Below are positions 20,844 to 64,000 of a stretch of 64,000 nucleotides of DNA, piece by piece. The stretch's first letter is position 1, and each line of letters starts with the position of its first letter. A program made the translations under genes and the position numbers. The notes below the pieces were generated by a model that did no database searches, had not been told where the DNA came from, and was given only the letters and a program-made list of their open reading frames with translations. Location: the NCBI RefSeq assembly GCF_026571515.1, contig NW_026863975.1, forward strand, positions 1 to 64,000, in the 5' to 3' direction. This DNA comes from Ruditapes philippinarum. Taxonomy: Eukaryota.

Positions 20844-21102
20844 TAATGATAATGAGGACTGAAATGTGGTCAAAACTAAACATTCATGGTGTAAACACTG
20901 TGTTTTCTTTATCGGCAATTATGGATTCGGTTATTCGAGACGTTTCTTATTAATTAAATTGAAACGTTATAGTAACTGTTGTTTTTCAAAAATGTATTTA
21001 TTTTCAGAAAACTTCATACAAACTATTTAAATATGTATGTACACCGACTGAAAGGTTTAACAAATAAATCTAGAATAAGAGCAGCACAATAAATCAAACT
21101 GT

Positions 21103-21215
21103 TCATTGGAAAACAAAAAGAAACATAGCTAAGACTCCGAGGATAGCACCAACCAGTCCAGCTACCATAAACAGCCCACTGACCCAAGCGTCCTTTGCTT
21201 CGAAATTTGCGTATC
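21103..21215 (-). CDS. NLR terminal exon 6 encoding a transmembrane tail (GYANFEAKDAWVSGLFMVAGLVGAILGVLAMFLFVFQ*)
   Basis: Acceptor ttttgtataatttcag|, phase-1 match to the donor ACAG|GTAAGG at 21575/21574, and ~26 uncharged, mostly hydrophobic residues before TGA. Confidence 0.72.
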
Positions 21216-24200
21216 CTGAAATTATACAAAAATGTATTACTGTACTATATCAGCTCATGAAGATGATATATATTTCAGACTATCTAAAAATAATTTATAC
21301 ATTTACAGTACCATAACATTGACGCCAATGTGATGGATTAACAAGTTTAATTATATAAATTGTATTTTAAGATTGTGTGCTCATGCTCATTACATTTTTT
21401 TTGTTCCTATTATTTACACAACCATTTTTATCATTAAAATATTGATCATAAATTGAAAATATTTGTATTTATATTCAATATGTATTCAGACAAAAACGGC
21501 ACATATAGATTTACCTTAAATACCATTTCCTGAATACAAATTTGGTAGCTACCTAAAACTATCATCATCCTTACCTGTTTCGAATGAAAACTTTTTCTTG
21601 CTGTCGAACCTTACCCTATACTTGGTGGACTTTCTGATCTTGTTTGTTATCATATGGTATGTTAAGCAGCATGAAGGTATAATATCGCAACTTTCTATGA
21701 TAATAAGAACGGCTTTAGAAAGGTTATCGACGCTACGAATTAACTCTTCAAGTGCCGGAGTGGTTAATGTTACCTCGTAAAGATGTACACGTTCAATACT
21801 TCTCATTTCAGGAGCTAAGACGAATTTTCTACCACCAAAATCAGCATATTCAATTGCAAAACTTTTTATTTGCGTCAACTTTGTAAGGGATCCCGCCGCG
21901 TAGAGGGATACCTGTTCTTTTGAAAGGTACTTTAAGCGTAGCGTGTCAAGATTTGCTGCATTTGGCAGACTGCCTTCCAATTCCTTGTGAACATTGGTTG
22001 AAAGTCTTCCAGTATAACACATGTTTAAAACAGAAGGATTGACTCTTAGTGTTGAGATAGGTATGGTGCCAAGCCGTAACGTCTGCAGATTCTTATGTCT
22101 TGAAAGATCTAATACGCCACATTCTCCGCTGTGGTCCGAATCTTCACATTCAATATGACACAACCCAACCTCTGTCATTTCTGACTTTCCATTTATGTGA
22201 GCAAGTAAATCTTGAATGTCTGTATGAGATAAACGAATGCTATTTAGGCGTAATGACGTCAAAAGATCCATGCCAAATACTGTTCTTATAATTTCACGAG
22301 GAAGTTTTGTATACTTTGTGCGGTATTGTCCATCGATAAAGTTTGCAAAACATAAGTCGAGGCATTTTAATGATTTCTCAGAGTTTGTCAATAATTGTTC
22401 AAGATCATGTTTTGGTGGCGTAGCAATAACTTCTATCTTCTGAAGGCATTTCAAATTTGGAAGATCAATTTTTAAGAGTCTATCTGACACTTCTTTTGTT
22501 GACCTACTTTGCTCTATACTTAATGATTTGATATTATCTGTATTTTTCCGGATGATCTTTACAAGTGTTTTGAACCTTTTGTTAGTAATTGAATTATCTA
22601 ATACAATATCCTCTAGATATAAGTCAAAGTCTCGATGATTGTTTCTCAACATTTCTTGTAAGATATCAGTCTGCATAGACTGAAACGACTTTACAACTTC
22701 CCAACATTTTCGATACTCTGGTAATGACGTTCTTCCAGATAAGCGGCACCTGTAGCGACTTATTGTTTCGTCTGTTGACATTATAGACCTCTGTAAATCT
22801 GCAATATTCTCATAAGCCACAGGACTAAAGCCACCCAGGAATACAAACATATTTGACAGCTGCAAAATGGATTCCAATGTACTGTACTCCGTAAGAAGAC
22901 TCTTTTTTAAATCTAGATTGTATGGACTCGCCTGAATATACAGTGCAGCGAAATACTCTTGAATGGTTTTATGCTGAAACGAAAAGTTACTTTTCCTACC
23001 TGAAATCTTTGTATAGTCTTTATTCTGAGATAACAATCCTTTGTTAAGGAAAAGGCTTTGCTCATCGGTTGAGATAAATTTGTCCACAATATGGTCCTCA
23101 AATATAAGTGCTGATTCGTTTCTCCCACTGGTAAGTGTTTCAAATGCTAATTTCCCAAGCCTTAGAAGTTGCTGATAGTAATGCAAACACTCTTTATTTG
23201 CTGAAAAACATACAAGATGATTTACACTTTCATTTGAGGCAGTTTCTGTGACAGTCACGTCTGTAAAACTCTTACCTCGAGCAAGATTAAGTTCTATAGT
23301 GTTGCTATAGATCTGACATTGAGAATTTCCTATTGTATAGTCGTCGAACCATAGGCAAATCAATTGTAAAAATATGTAAGGTATGGACATTAAAGCATCA
23401 ATTTTTGTAGATGACACAGCGGTTCGAAAGTCTTCTACTTTTTTTGAAGTCCTATACGCTCTATTAAATAGCTTTACGGCCGAAGCTAATAACTGGTTTG
23501 ATTTTGTCTCGTCAAATTCAAGAAGCTCATATAGCATATCGATTTGACTGTTTTGAATTTTTGATGAATAAAGTTTCCATGGACGTGTTGTAGTGAGGAT
23601 TGTACAGTTTGGCCAATGTCGTCGATGGGGAATAACATCACCCTTGTGTTCGCAGTTTTCTGGATGCATCCATTCATCCAACCCATCAAGTATAATCAAC
23701 ACATTCTTTTCGAGCAATAATTTGTCCAAAAATCTTCTGCTGTAAATGTTAGGGAAAGGCATGTTTTTTTGCAACATGTGGTATATCATTTTATTGATAT
23801 GGCACTCATTTGTATCTGTTTCTTTTAAAGATATAAAAAACAATAAATCAAACATCTTCAAAGTTGTAAAATCTTCCGTTTGACTTGCTGACTTAATAAC
23901 CGGTAAATGTGCCTGGCACCATGTCAAGCAAACCTTTTTTACAAATGAGGTCTTTCCGATCCCCGCCTTTGCAATGACATAAATTTCCGTATACGGTTGT
24001 TTACCGGAAAGGAATAGATCTTTGTATGAACATATTTCATGTTTAGATGTAGAATTATTTGCATCTAGGAATGCATTTGTTATTTCTATAGATCTGATTG
24101 TTGGCTGCACGTAAACCTCTTCAAGCGGAACATCATTTTCTATTATCAACGGAGAGATAGGTAATGTTCCTTGGGAACGTCTGTAAACTTTTACCAAATC

Positions 24201-26994
24201 ACGGCGTAACCCTGAAATTATAGACACAATTTTATAAGTTGAAACAATTTCTAAACTGTAGTAACTGAAGCACGTTCATAAAAACAAAAGCACAAGAAAA
24301 TAAGATCATTCGTCAAAAAGATATTCTAAATTTACATTTAGTAAGAACATTTAGCTCTTAATCGGTATTGCTTTATTTATCTAGTGTTTCTAAGCTTGTT
24401 GTAAACAGCAATGTTTAAGACAGAACGTCGGGTTGTACTTTATAATACAAGATATAAACAATAATGGTTTTTTTTTCTAATTTGCAAGTACATTATATAT
24501 AATATGGTTATAATCTTTCAGAACAAAAGAAATATGCGTCTTCAGAAACAAATTCAAACATTTATTAACAACAGTTAACAGCACTTACTTTTACAAAGGC
24601 GTTTGTATTTCAAACAGGAAAGTATATCAAAACCATAGGCTTGCTGAGGAAAATCGTTTGCTGTAAATGCGAAACAAGAAGAATTGATGAATAGATTCGT
24701 TTTTCTTTATTTTATCATAAATTACTTATAATAGCAAAACAAATTTGGTTTGTAATCTAGCTTAGAAAACTTTCTCAATGACAACTGATCTGGAACATTA
24801 AGTTTAATGAATATTGTCTCACACCGTTGATTTATAAATCATATGGGATTAATTAAAAATAGTTCACTTGCACAAAATACATGAAATACTTGTGATTTTT
24901 ACAGGAAAGCTGGGCAGGTGGACCGGATGCCGAGATATGACTTAAATCGGTTTAACAACAAACAAATTTATTGGTAAGCATAATACACATTAGTCGTTTT
25001 AAGGACGTTATTAACTCATATACATAGGCATGTATAAACACGGTCAAACCAACATTGCAATGTATATCTCGACAGTTTGACAAAAATCAACATAGCTTAC
25101 CAATTCCCTTTTGGAGAATTTCATCGACTACTTCACTTTTAATTTCTTCCTTCATTTTTATTAGAGCCTGTAACTTTATTGTGACTATGTAATCTAGTTG
25201 TGCAAGTGGTAGAGTTTCTTTGTTGGCTACCTCCGATTTAATGTCGTTTATCAATTTACGCGGTATCTGCATCGCATCTTCTTTATTCTGCATTTCTTTT
25301 TCATTTCCAGTGGAAGAATCTATTTCTTCACTGGCGGTCTCTAACGCTTTATTTAGATCTACCACATGAACAGTTATTTCATTCTTCTTCAGCTGAAAAA
25401 TGAAAACAAAATCATTATATTGGCTCGAATTTTATGTAACACTTCAAAATACACGTATAGCTTCGTAAATTAAGCTTTAAATATGTTGACCTTTGTATAT
25501 GTAAAGTTTTTAACGTAAGATTTTAGAGATCCTGTATGTTGAAATTAAGGACTTAAGTGAAATTCTATATATGTATATTATTATGCTTCTTCAACAATTT
25601 TCAAACACCGAAGAATATGTAAAGTATGTACTGCAAATATTTGTCCATAATCATTAAAATATATAAATTTCTTATTGAAAAGATATCTTAGACTTTATAG
25701 AAAATAAATTTCAAATTACCTACCTTTATTAACATGTAATGTAAACTCGGTAATATCTTTACAAATAATGCTTTTTGGAACTTACAATATTGATAAATCT
25801 TCATTTGAGCAATAAATTTATGATAAAAAACATAACAATGAGTTACAGGATCTTTATAAAATCTACTAGACTTCTTTGATAACTGTAAAATATAACATAA
25901 GTTTGCAGTAGCTATTTATTGCCTTCATTGTCCAATGAAAATCGACCTTACAAACGTGCAGAATTATAATTTCAAATACACGCCATTTATGTTCAATGTT
26001 TATACAATGTTTAATTGAACGTCATGCAATTCACCAACCAAGTTAAGCTGTTTCACTGCTTCTTGTGCTGTTTTGTTATGAGCCAAACATTCAGCATCGG
26101 AAAGAAGACTTATCAAACTGTCAATATAAGTTTCTAGGTTTGTTCGTGAAACAATCAAATCTCCAGAATGTCTAATATCATTGCCCATATCACGCACCTA
26201 AAATAAAACAAATTATTATAGTAATGTTAATAAAAAATTCAACACATTGACACTTTGTAATTTCATTTATTGAAAGTTATGTTAAATGTTATGCTTTTGT
26301 CAAAAGCCGATTGTTATATTGAATGAGTTTTGGGTGCAATATACCTGTATTCACCAGATAATTCACTAATTGTTAAAGCCAATGCTTTCATATGAACGGT
26401 TAAGAAACTCTTTAAAAAGAAATACAATGTAAAGATTACCTTTGTGACCTTATTTACTTTCTCACTGAGCAGATTTGGCATTGTGCGTCCAAAACTTTTC
26501 TTACATATAAGTATGGAAAGAAACCCATTAAAATCCACATCTTTAAGGCTCTTGGCATTTTTGTAACGGTTTGTAGGAGGCACAAAACATTTCGCTATTT
26601 CGACTAAGTCGGTGCACCATCTTGTTGCGTCTGTACTTTTCCAATTAGGTGTCTGCCTGTGCTGTTTTCGTAATTCGTCTCGGATATGATGGCATATGTC
26701 CTTTGCACATTTTCTTCCAGGTACCTCTCCTTGAATCGTTGAACTATGGTAAACACATCTATTTTGACGTCCCTTGACACAAAAGTTGTTCGTTGGACAG
26801 CTCAAAATAAGTTCAGTCGTACATGAGTTGCAAATGGAGCTTTTATTTATCTTGTGTTTTGTGAGGACTGTTTGGATGAACTTATTTAAATCGTCTTCCA
26901 AAGTGGATTCTATTCCCTGTTTTGTCAAATTCATTGCCATATGACTTTTCAGCCAGTTCAAAAAACCGTCTTCTTTTAACAACGAATCCATCAT
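21103..26994 (-). CDS. NLR-like NACHT protein, 1269 aa: DUF4559/CXorf38-like N-terminus, helical linker, NACHT, LRR-like region, C-terminal TM; join(26994-26458, 26197-26039, 25392-25101, 24660-24589, 24211-21575, 21215-21103)
   Basis: All introns are GT-AG with compatible phases (0,0,1,1,1). The total is 3810 nt with no internal stop seen. The exon boundaries that fall inside the duplicated region are conserved in the inverted paralog at 60-64 kb. NACHT motifs are in exon 5. Confidence 0.82.
21575..24211 (-). CDS. NLR exon 5: NACHT (NBD-HD1-WHD-HD2) plus LRR-like region
   Basis: Lies within the 892-aa ORF. Pre-NACHT PLEEVYVQP, Walker A AKAGIGKTS, Walker B VLIILDGLDEW, sensor-1 ILTTTRP, WHD FSFQHKTIQEYFAA, and LxxLxL repeats (LKCLDL, LTSLRL, LQTLRL, LDTLRL). 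Confidence 0.93.
24589..24660 (-). CDS. NLR exon 4 (72 nt, phase 1-1)
   Basis: catttacag| ... |gtaagt, open frame ANDFPQQAYGFDILSCLKYKRLCK, conserved at 62189-62260. Confidence 0.65.
25101..25392 (-). CDS. NLR exon 3 (helical/coiled-coil-like linker)
   Basis: ttttcag|CTGAAG ... ATTG|gtaagc, paralog at 61418-61736. Confidence 0.82.
25527..25853. mobile_element. MITE-like insertion in NLR intron 2, absent from the paralogous intron
   Basis: Inverted termini agatcctgta (25527-25536) and tacaggatct (25844-25853). The paralogous intron 61112-61417 is ~340 bp shorter. A related inverted copy is at ~41511-41830. Confidence 0.65.
26039..26197 (-). CDS. NLR exon 2 (C-terminal part of the DUF4559-like domain, VRDMGNDIRHSGDL...)
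   Basis: ttttag|GTG ... TTG|gttggt, 159 nt, phase 0-0, paralog at 60953-61111. Confidence 0.85.
26458..26994 (-). CDS. NLR first coding exon: Cys/His-rich DUF4559/CXorf38-like domain
   Basis: NWLKSHMAMNLTKQG...CNSC...C...C...C..H...C..C...HRQTPNWKSTDATRWCTDLVEIAKCF...DVDFNGFLSILIC, ending at the donor AAA|gtaaat. Confidence 0.85.
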
Positions 26995-60155: not shown

Positions 60156-63100
60156 ATGATGGATTCGTTGTTAAAGGAAGGCGGCTTTTGGAACTGGCTA
60201 AAAAGTCACCTGGCAATGGTTTTGACAAAACAAGGAATAGAGTCGACTTTGGAAGACGATTTAAATAACTTTATCCAAACAGTCCTTACAGAACACAAGA
60301 TAAATAAAAGTTCCATTTGCAGTTCATGTACGACTGAACTTATTTTGAGCTGTCCAACGAAAAACTTTTGTGTCAAGGGACGTCAAAATAGATGTGTTTC
60401 CCATTGTTCAACGATTCAAGGAGAGGTACCTGGAAGAAATTGTGCAAAGGACATATGCCATCATATCCGAGACAAAATACGAAAACAGCACAGGCAGATA
60501 CCTAATTGGAAAAGTACAGACGCAACAAGATGGTGTACCGACTTAGTCGAAATAGCGAAATGTTTTGTGCCTCCTACAGACCGTTACAGAAATGCCAAGA
60601 GCCTTAAAGATGTGGATTTTAATGGGTTTCTTTCCATACTTATATGTAAAAAAAGCTTTGGACGCACAATGCCAAATTTGCTCAGTGAAAAAGTAAATAA
60701 GGTCACAAAGGTAATTTTTACATTGTTTTTTTTCAAGAGTTTCTTAACCGTTCATATGAAAGCGATGGCTATAACATTTAGTGATTTATCTGGTGAATAC
60801 AGGTATATTGCACCCAAAACCCATTCAGTATATAACAATCGGTTTTTGACATAAAACATAACATTTAACATAACTTCCAATTAATGAAATTACAAAGTGT
60901 CAATGTGTTGAAATTTTATTAACATTACTATAATAATTGTGTTTTATTTTAGGTCCGTGATATGGGCAATGATATAAGACATTCTGGAGATTTGATTGTT
61001 TCACGAACAAATCTAGAAACTTATATTGACAGTTTGATAAGTCTTCTTTCCGATGCTGAATGTTTGGCTCATAACGAAGCAGCACAAGAAGCAGTGAAAC
61101 AGCTTTACTTGGTTGGTGAATTGCATGACGTTAAATTAAACATTGTATAAACATTGATCATATCTTAAATGGCGCGTATTTGAAATTCTGCACGTTTGTA
61201 ACGTCGATTTTCATTTGACAATGAGGGCAATAAACAGCTGCTGCAAATTCATATTTTATCTTTTTGTTATCAAAGAAGCCTAGTAGGTTTGGTTTTAAAA
61301 TCTGATAACAGTTTACACATACAAAGGCCAATCTATTAAAAGCTTAATCAACAGAGTTATGTATTGAAAGTTTACATAAAATAGGGCTTACATAATGATT
61401 CTATTTTCATTTTTCAGCTGAAGAAGAATGAAGTAACCGTCCCCGTTGAACATTTAAATGAAGCGTTAGAGAATGCCGGTGAAGAAATAGACCAACACTT
61501 AAATAAGAAAGACGCAGAATCGACCACTGGAAATGAAACAAAAAGGCAGAATAAAGAAGATGCGATGCAAATACCACGTAAGGTGATAAACGATATAAAA
61601 ACGGAGGTAGCCAACAAAGAAACTCTGCCACTTACACAATTAGATACCATAGTCACAATAAAGTTGCAAGCTCTTAAAGAAATGAAGGAAGAAATTAAAG
61701 GTGAAGTGGTCGATGAAATTCTCCGAAAGGGAAATGGTAAGCGATGTTGATTTTTGTAAAATTGTCGATATATAATGTTAGTTTGACCGTCTTAATACAT
61801 GCCTATGTATATGAATTATTAAGTTAAGTGTATTAATATGCTAACTAATAAATCCAGAGTTTTATGTTTGTTGTTAAACCAATTTAAGTCATATCTCGTC
61901 ATCTGGTCAGTCTGCCCGGCTTTTCTGTAAAATAACCAGTATTTGATGTATTTTGCGCATGTGAACGACCTATAGTTAATCCAATATGATTTATAGGTCA
62001 GCGGTGTGAGACAATATTAATTAGACTTAATGTCTCAGATCAGTTGTCGTAGAGAAAGTTTGTTTAGCTCGATGTTTGAGCATGCGAACCCTGGATTACA
62101 AATCCAATTTGTTTTCGTTACAAGTAATTTATGATAAAATAAAGAAGAACGAAACTATTTAACAGTTCTTCTTGTTTCGCATTTACAGCAAATGATTTTC
62201 CTCAGCATGCCTATCGTTTTGATATCCTTTCCTGTTTGAAATACAAACACCTTTGTAAAAGTAAGTGCTGTTAACTTTTGTTCATAAATTTTCAAAATGG
62301 TTTTAATGTGTTCCTTAAGACGCATATTTCTTTTGTTCTGAAGGATAATAACCATTATTTATTTGCAAATTCACAAAAACATAGTTTATAAACTTTATTA
62401 TAAAGTATAACCCGACGTCTTGTCTTCAAGATTGCTGTAAACAATAAGCTTAGAACCACTAGATAAATTTAATGTTTCTCTTTAACCACTAGATAAATTT
62501 TATGTTTCTCTTCTAAGTTAAAATAATACCGATTAAAGGCTAAATTGTTCTTACTATATGTAAATCTAAAATATCTATTTGACGAATGATCTAAGTTTAT
62601 TGTGCTTTTGTTTAAATAACCATGCTTAAGTTACTCTAGTTTAGAATTTGTTTCAGCGTATAAAAATATGTCCAAAATTTCAGGGTTACGCCATGATTTG
62701 GTAACTTTTTACAGACGTTCCCAAGGAACATTACCTATCTCTCCGTTGATAATAGAAAATGATGTTCCGCTTGAAGAGGTTTACGTGCAGCCAACAATCA
62801 GATCAATAGAAATAACAAATGCATTCCTAGATGCAAATAATGCTACATCTAAACATGAAACAACCGTATACAGAAGTTTATGTCATTGCAAAGGCGGGCG
62901 TCGGAAAGACCTCATTTGTAAAAAAGGTTTGCTTGACATGGTGCCAGGCACATTTGTCGGTTATTAAGTCAGCAATGTTTTATCAAACGGAAGATCTTAC
63001 AACTTTGAAGATGTTTGATTTATTGTTTTTTATATCTTTAAAAGAAACAGATACACATGAGTGCCATATAAATAAAATGATATACCACATGTTGCAAAAA

Positions 63101-64000
63101 AGCATGCCTGACCCTAACATTTACAGCAGAAGATTTTTGGACAAAATATTGCTCGAAAAGAATGTGTTAATTATACTTGATGGGTTGGATGAATGGATGC
63201 ACCCAGAAAACTGCGAACACATGGGTGATGTTATTCCCCATCGACGGCATTGGCCTAACTGCACAATTCTCACTTCAACACGTCCATGGAAACTTTATTC
63301 ATCAAAAATTCAAAACAGTCAAATCGATATGCTATCTGAGCTTCTTGAATTCGACGAGACAAAATCAAACCAGTTATTAGCGTCAGCACTGAAGTTATTT
63401 AATAGAGCGTATATGACTTCAAAAAAGGTAGAAGACTTTCGAACCGCTGTGTCATCTCTAAAAGTCGATGTTTTAAGGTCAATACCTTACATATTTTTAC
63501 AATTGATTTGCCTGTGGTTCGACGACTATACAATAGGAAATTCTCAATGTCAGATCTATAGCAACACTATAGAACTCAATCTTGTTCGAGGTAAGAGCTT
63601 TACAGACGTGACTGTCACAGAAACTGCCTCAAATGAAAGTGTTAATCATCCTGTATGCTTGTCAGCAAATAAAGAGTGTTTGCATCACTACCAGCAACTT
63701 TTAAGGCTTGGGAAATTAGCATTTGAAACACTTACCAGTGGGAGAAACGAATCAGCACTTATATTTGATGACCATATTGTAAACAAATTTATCTCAACCG
63801 ATGAGCAACGTTTTCTTTTAAACAAAGGATTGTTATCCCAGAATAAAGACTTTAGAAAGGTTTCAGAAAGAAAGAGTAACTTTTCGTTTCAGCATAAAAC
63901 CATTCAGGAATATTTCGCTGCACTGTATATTCAGTCGAGTCCACATAATCCTGATTTAAAAAAGCGTCTTCTTACGGAATACAGTACATTGGAATCCATT
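60156..64000 (+). pseudogene. Paralogous NLR copy; exons 60156-60692, 60953-61111, 61418-61736, 62189-62260, 62684->64000; 35-bp frameshift deletion at 62860/62861
   Basis: Same exons and splice sites as the minus-strand gene. tatgttcatacaaagatctattcctttccggtaaa is missing, giving a stop at 62965-62967. The original NACHT frame (AKAGVGKTS, ILDGLDEW, FQHKTIQEYFAA) is still readable downstream. Confidence 0.85.
62454..62512. repeat. 2 x 30-bp tandem duplication in the paralog's intron 4
   Basis: aaccactagataaattt(a/t)atgtttctctt occurs twice. Confidence 0.8.

Follow-up and report, generated by a model that had tools for sequence, protein, structure and literature searches.

Does a NACHT-LRR gene of the Manila clam, Ruditapes philippinarum, end as a soluble protein at the stop codon of its long open reading frame (ORF), or does it run through one further exon into a helix that would hold the protein in a membrane? 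NLRs are textbook soluble cytosolic sensors, and the site of their action is debated, with NLRP3 placed on Golgi and endosomal membranes and NOD1/2 reaching membranes via palmitoylation. The question is raised by a gene, here called gene A, on the minus strand of the stretch of DNA that we analysed (the window, 64,000 nucleotides, positions 1 to 64,000 of contig NW_026863975.1). The first-pass annotation of this window proposed that a terminal exon makes the NACHT-LRR product a tail-anchor-type protein, and the proposal held in every in silico test run. The reading of gene A as a putative tail-anchored NLR is well supported in silico, and its orthologue in another clam genus, Mercenaria, also ends in a hydrophobic helix.

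The NACHT protein is encoded by an 892-aa ORF on the minus strand (21549..24227; ORF scan and translation of the window), in which Pfam recognises the NACHT domain PF05729 (E 6.6e-10, 39.5 bits against a cut-off of 26.7) and where the P-loop can be read in the translation as a Walker A motif, GIGKT, together with a Walker B-like ILDGLDEW. The donor GAAACAG/GTAAGG closes the exon in phase 1 at position 21575, eight codons short of the TAG of the ORF (21551-21549), and the acceptor tataatttcag/GA opens the tail exon at 21215 with the frame kept. On re-reading the sequence, the 892-aa ORF, the donor, the 359-nt intron, the in-phase acceptor and the translation of the tail were all found where they had been placed. 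A cluster look-up identified the gene as R. philippinarum LOC132723986, whose RefSeq protein XP_060564774.1 (P0003, 1275 aa) has a C-terminus identical to the predicted junction and tail. In this sense "hidden", the word first applied to the exon, was wrong, as the public annotation already includes the exon, inside the model of an "uncharacterized protein"; no discussion of the LOC132723986 model was found in the literature searched. Mapping P0003 back onto the window gives six coding exons with GT-AG borders throughout, and the features of the locus are as follows.

21103..21215, minus strand: terminal coding exon, 113 nt, a split first codon plus 36 codons, TGA at 21105-21103 (translation; equals the C-terminus of P0003 and of P0001, the RefSeq model of paralogue B).
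21109..21189, minus strand: codons of the 27-residue uncharged segment, a predicted transmembrane helix (Kyte-Doolittle hydropathy; AlphaFold2 model of P0001; Mercenaria alignment).
20997..21002, minus strand: AATAAA polyadenylation signal, about 100 nt 3' of the stop of the tail exon (pattern scan; also in the copy on contig C4467).
21216..21574, minus strand: last intron, 359 nt, GT..AG, holding the read-through codons for GKDDDSFR and the in-frame TAG at 21551-21549 (sequence).
21575..24211, minus strand: coding exon 5, encoding the NACHT NTPase, helical domains and LRR; the CAG/GT donor closes it in phase 1 (ORF, Pfam, P0003 mapping; fold via the paralogue P0001).
24589..24660, minus strand: coding exon 4 (P0003 mapping, GT-AG borders).
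25101..25392, minus strand: coding exon 3 (P0003 mapping, GT-AG borders).
26039..26197, minus strand: coding exon 2, DUF4559 region (P0003 mapping).
26440..26994, minus strand: coding exon 1, DUF4559 region, start ATG at 26994 (P0003 mapping).
60159..64000, plus strand: paralogue B (gene B), which extends past the window edge and past the contig end at 65017 (tblastn of P0001 and P0002, the latter being the Mercenaria orthologue).

The tail exon encodes 27 residues in a row, none of them charged or strongly polar, in a run that ends one residue before the stop; about 26 had been announced. On the Kyte-Doolittle (KD) scale its 19-residue mean is 2.68 (residues 1256-1274 of 1275), the maximum of the protein, and the next-best window, of 1.76, lies within the folded NACHT region, so that the tail is the sole segment above 1.9 in 1275 aa. 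The classic threshold of Kyte and Doolittle for membrane segments is reportedly 1.6. The first 35 residues of P0003 hold no signal-like hydrophobic core in a hydropathy check (top 8-residue KD of 0.36), and a hydropathy scan of its N-terminal 1200 residues found no hydrophobic segment like the N-terminal helices of the anthozoan type. By hydropathy, the protein has a single predicted transmembrane segment, as a tail-anchored protein does, and neither signal peptide nor anchor at its N-terminus. Beyond the uncharged run there is only one residue in R. philippinarum, and there are four in Mercenaria, within the limit of about 30-40 residues for tail-anchored proteins, and the net charge C-terminal to the helix is 0 in both. 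In tail-anchored proteins the C-terminal segment is still within the ribosome at termination, and insertion into the membrane is post-translational, by GET/TRC40, by EMC or unassisted. The GxxxA/GxxxG-like spacing that had been noted in the tail corresponds to a small-xxx-small pattern, A..G..G at i, i+4 and i+8, and three glycines and one alanine of the R. philippinarum tail stand in register with the Mercenaria tail.

Whether the rest of the protein deserves the name of NLR was assessed on its fold. No Pfam match to LRR was found in gene A or P0003 in the Pfam scan. An AlphaFold2 (AF2) model was made of P0001, which is 91% identical to gene A, from a 69-sequence alignment (mean predicted local distance difference test score, pLDDT, 87.7; predicted template modelling score, pTM, 0.84), and it contains beta-alpha repeats at residues 428-772, mostly with pLDDT above 90, followed by a terminal helix at 777-808 (pLDDT 47-62) that is undocked from the LRR. 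A Foldseek search of this model against the PDB gave NLRC4 as the top match (4kxf, E 2e-18), then NOD2, NLRP3 and NLRP9, and the NLR matches (E 2e-18 to 1e-12) span about 800-900 aligned columns with the LRRs included. By the modelled fold of the paralogue, the gene A product is therefore a NACHT-LRR at the fold level, with a true NLR fold including the LRR, and the label first given to it is correct despite the missing Pfam LRR. The N-terminus holds no death-fold or BIR effector. It is formed by DUF4559 (PF15112 at residues 7-279 of P0003, E 5e-14; NACHT at 440-601; Pfam), and the N-terminal effector domain is thus non-canonical for an NLR; non-canonical N-termini are common among the NLRs of invertebrates (PMC9646362). 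The DUF4559 domain is encoded by the N-terminal exons (26039-26994, minus strand), and the Mercenaria orthologue has there an additional faint match to Swt1-like HEPN (E 0.068).

The closest protein outside Ruditapes is Mercenaria mercenaria LOC123557924 (P0002, 1264 aa), 53% identical and also with DUF4559 and NACHT. A search of other bivalve NLRs for the same tail had been suggested, and it is this orthologue that answers it: its tail holds a 26-residue uncharged segment (KD 2.55) that stops four residues before the C-terminus. The local score between both tails is 41, against 20.2 +/- 4.1 for shuffles that preserve composition, of which 1 in 2000 reaches 41. A HMMER scan of 1.84 billion representatives returned 778 relatives, and among the best 150 of these 778 a hydrophobic C-terminus was found only in the R. 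philippinarum cluster, in P0002, in a second Mercenaria protein (P0085) and, doubtfully, in P0068, which puts the base rate of such tails at about 2-3% for the family. P0068, an ENA entry, has a hydrophobic end of KD 2.07 with an Arg and an Asn in it, and for this it was treated as doubtful. The spliced tail rises above chance because the RefSeq model is identical to it, the tail of the Mercenaria orthologue is alike and the similarity depends on the order of residues; the tail exon is very probably real.

A maximum-likelihood tree was built from 69 members after an occupancy filter had removed the tail columns. It places P0001 and P0002 as sisters (100% support in the Shimodaira-Hasegawa-like approximate likelihood ratio test, SH-aLRT) within a 99%-supported clade of eight, the other six members of which are tail-less and stop just after the FxFxT motif, and P0085 and P0068 are located elsewhere. 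The most economical history would be a single gain of the tail before the split between Ruditapes and Mercenaria. In tail-less relatives the protein stops 2-16 residues past FxFxT, and the read-through end of gene A, FSFET plus the eight residues GKDDDSFR and then the stop, has the same short form; this resemblance fits an origin of the tail via a donor just upstream of an old stop. As a separate observation, the acceptors of exon 5 (24210-24221) and of the tail exon (21214-21225) have in common the 12-mer tataatttcagg on the minus strand, which may be a coincidence or a trace of the origin of the new acceptor.

The second tail-bearing protein, Mercenaria LOC123549242 (P0085), carries its C-terminal helix within the main ORF. 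Its R. philippinarum orthologue (L035, contig C3781:331576-334065, L035:1366-4155, minus strand, 53% identity) is a single 930-aa ORF with NACHT (E 6.6e-8) and a C-terminal hydrophobic segment of KD 2.46, in which the helix is followed by a basic end of ten residues, four of them Lys/Arg. This branch involves no splice prediction. C-terminal helices on NACHT proteins are therefore conserved between both clams in two distinct family branches, and L035/P0085 seems to be an independent lineage of tail-anchor type that differs in its charge signature. A tentative extension of this, which we put forward as a possibility and not as our expectation, is that tail-anchored NLRs of venerid clams evolved at least twice, by exonisation before an old stop and as a helix in the main exon, and that the charges of 0 and +4 would send them to different organelle surfaces. 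They would then form a surveillance layer fixed at the sensor itself, unlike that of the adaptors MAVS and STING, and intron retention could restore a soluble form in the first lineage.

Further copies in the clam genome were compared with gene A. Paralogue B is oriented divergently to gene A and lies about 33 kb away. Its RefSeq model P0001 (809 aa) starts at an internal Met and has the same junction and tail as gene A, so the suggestion to follow the paralogue beyond position 64000 led, in its protein model, to the same tail. P0001 agrees with the contig end at 100% over residues 1-681, and residues 682-809 (128 residues) lie beyond the assembly. In this last part 126 of the 128 residues equal those of gene A and two differ, and elsewhere the identity is about 90%; most likely the annotator used transcript evidence for the off-assembly residues. 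The near-identity of this 3' end to gene A would suggest either transcript-based completion or gene conversion. When searched alone against the genome, the tail exon matches only gene A and a copy on contig C4467 (L003, C4467:9000-18999), the tail exon of paralogue B being absent from the assembly. The body of the C4467 copy is 97% identical to gene A, with the NACHT-LRR exon broken up into four ORFs and a RefSeq model cut short at 490 aa; the tail exon is open and the AATAAA persists. If these breaks do not stem from indels in the assembly, the copy is probably a young pseudogene. Its tail differs by six amino-acid changes, four of which keep the hydrophobic character (A>V twice, G>V, F>I) and two of which are neutral and located in the linker (A>V, A>T). 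The in-frame read-through stop eight codons into the intron is kept in both gene A and this copy.

Beyond these copies, at least 126 genome loci match the C-terminal 300 aa of the big exon, most of them as single ORFs of about 880 aa, about 28% identical, that end soon after the FxFxT motif. The ends of these at least 126 single-exon NACHT-LRR ORFs carry a conserved F-x-F-K-T-T-T motif, and as a group they represent a very large lineage-specific NLR-like expansion. Further word-index protein searches returned self matches only, or none.

Taken together, we consider it probable that gene A encodes a DUF4559-NACHT-LRR protein with a single C-terminal helix that anchors it by its tail to the cytosolic side of an endomembrane, probably that of the endoplasmic reticulum (ER), and that this tail was gained once. 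In this reading, a donor eight codons upstream of the older stop would have come into use and left the older stop within an intron, and we infer that the resulting junction is used in vivo. As the helix comes last in the chain and the N-terminus lacks a signal, it would leave the ribosome only at termination and would be inserted post-translationally, so that the whole sensor would stay cytosolic with the effector domain pointing away from the membrane. The LRR end would be pinned at the membrane surface, because only about 5-11 residues lie between the last LRR strand and the helix. The small-xxx-small pattern could, as a speculation, serve helix-helix packing when NACHT domains oligomerise. 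As to the organelle, in mammalian cells it is set by the hydrophobicity of the helix together with the C-terminal charge (PMC5450235), and by this rule a helix of high hydrophobicity and a tail without net charge, as found in both species, would point to the ER or ER-derived membranes.

Several observations weigh against this reading. RefSeq models can be partly ab initio, and no transcript-derived ORF fragment was found for the end of the big exon when its last 200 aa were used as query (candidates of 110-350 aa). The linkers from FxFxT to the helix are unlike between the two species, and nearly all of the best 150 of the 778 family representatives are without a credible tail. Scanning 1.4 kb downstream of 24 distant paralogues (about 26-31% identity) revealed no credible tail exon, and for this reason the tail is not a family-wide feature. 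Of 27 further loci, a near-copy and otherwise distant paralogues, about half have an open frame of KD >= 2.2 in the AT-rich DNA downstream; since such chance hydrophobic frames are common in AT-rich flanks, hydrophobicity says little by itself. Between gene A and the C4467 copy the coding sequence of the tail is less conserved (91.2%) than the intron (95.5%) and the body (97.3%), which is no sign of purifying selection, in a comparison with what is apparently a broken gene. Finally, the targeting rule is mammalian and its use for a bivalve would be an extrapolation. An annotation artefact, in which the real protein would end in FSFET-GKDDDSFR and the tail would be a chance AT-rich frame spliced on by the predictor, would be consistent with the absence of short transcript-derived fragments, with the hydrophobic frames at other loci, with the poor conservation of the tail and with a read-through end that stops where those of relatives do. 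We regard it as improbable, because a 53%-identical orthologue has the same kind of tail with its glycines aligned, in a family where such ends are rare, the splice sites are canonical and in the right phase with an AATAAA after the stop, the model of paralogue B passes the contig end with the same junction, and the C4467 tail frame is open with all six changes hydrophobic or neutral.

The same read-through end would fit a different proposal, namely two isoforms, the spliced one anchored and the one with the retained intron soluble as in the ancestral form, which would make a localisation switch at the RNA level. The resemblance to tail-less relatives suits such a soluble form without showing that the isoform exists, both gene A and the C4467 copy retain the stop of ancestral type, and the intron is short. 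However, an early in-frame stop after a donor is expected by chance in AT-rich introns, and no second RefSeq isoform of LOC132723986 was seen among the cluster members, so we hold the switch to be conceivable though rather doubtful. Concerning the organelle, the mitochondrial outer membrane or peroxisomes could take the place of the ER as a MAVS-like platform. The glycine-rich helix would have a reduced effective hydrophobicity, the basic end of L035 is of the type for which the mammalian rule favours peroxisomes or mitochondria (PMC5450235), and MAVS is a precedent of an innate-immune protein anchored to an organelle (PMC13032619). For gene A this destination seems unlikely, since its product and the Mercenaria orthologue have no basic residues on the C-terminal flank and combine charge 0 with a 19-residue KD of 2.55-2.68, which is the ER class of the rule (PMC5450235). 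That the helix is buried or serves oligomerisation in a soluble protein, packing on the LRR or on other copies, is what we believe least: small-xxx-small patterns are also found in soluble helix-helix interfaces and AF2 gave the helix low confidence, but 27 uncharged, mostly aliphatic or aromatic residues are far above the 1.6 threshold, and the model leaves the helix detached from the LRR. Low pLDDT is, moreover, usual for free membrane helices. The membrane-anchored protein, probably at the ER, remains the reading that we prefer.

If this reading is true, an anchor that directly follows the LRR would hold the ligand-sensing end at the membrane and would confine oligomerisation to two dimensions. 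It would also constitute a clean natural example of a change of architecture via the gain of a 3' exon within a large lineage-specific NLR expansion, and it is relevant to disease resistance in a clam of major importance to aquaculture. The interest of the finding is that the architecture is unusual for the family, conserved across genera and recurrent. In the full-text literature search, no paper with a title or abstract on a tail-anchored NACHT protein was found.

In the core fold (NACHT, helical domains and C-terminal LRR) the clam protein is like the vertebrate NLRs NLRC4, NOD2 and NLRP3, which differ in having an N-terminal CARD, PYD or BIR instead of DUF4559. Vertebrate NLRs gain access to membranes by lipidation or polybasic patches (NOD1/2, NLRP3) or by a mitochondrial presequence (NLRX1), and we know of no vertebrate NLR with a C-terminal transmembrane helix. 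The body of the clam protein is that of the tail-less bivalve NACHT expansion (at least 126 paralogous loci here, 778 public representatives), with a common single-exon NACHT-LRR body of about 880 aa and the FxFxT motif; members of this expansion stop soon after the motif without any hydrophobic tail, whereas gene A continues into its tail. Bivalve NACHT expansions have been reported with HEPN, death, TPR and WD40 combinations, and no transmembrane NLR was described among them (PMC9646362).

The statement of the first-pass annotation that animal NLRs are soluble stands as the norm of the family, but it may not hold for all of it, as putative membrane-bound NLRs with N-terminal helices have been published (PMC3879445, PMC5094078, PMC12909245). 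In anthozoans these have 3-5 N-terminal helices (PMC3879445, PMC5094078) and were called an anthozoan-specific innovation (PMC5094078), and similar putative membrane-bound NLRs were reported from sponges (PMC3879445, PMC12909245). Like the clam protein, they combine NACHT-LRR with predicted helices known from sequence alone. However, in anthozoans and Amphimedon one to five N-terminal helices replace the effector domain, while the clam protein has one C-terminal helix after the LRR and keeps its effector. The published membrane-bound NLRs with a described topology, from cnidarians and a sponge, have N-terminal helices only, and a C-terminal anchor would be new. By analogy, the nearest functional counterpart would be MAVS, which has its cytosolic domain held by one C-terminal helix and an organelle set by the tail, as proposed here for the clam protein (PMC13032619, PMC5450235). 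MAVS is a CARD adaptor without NTPase or LRR and there is no homology between the two, so that in the clam it would be the sensor itself, and not its adaptor, that is anchored.

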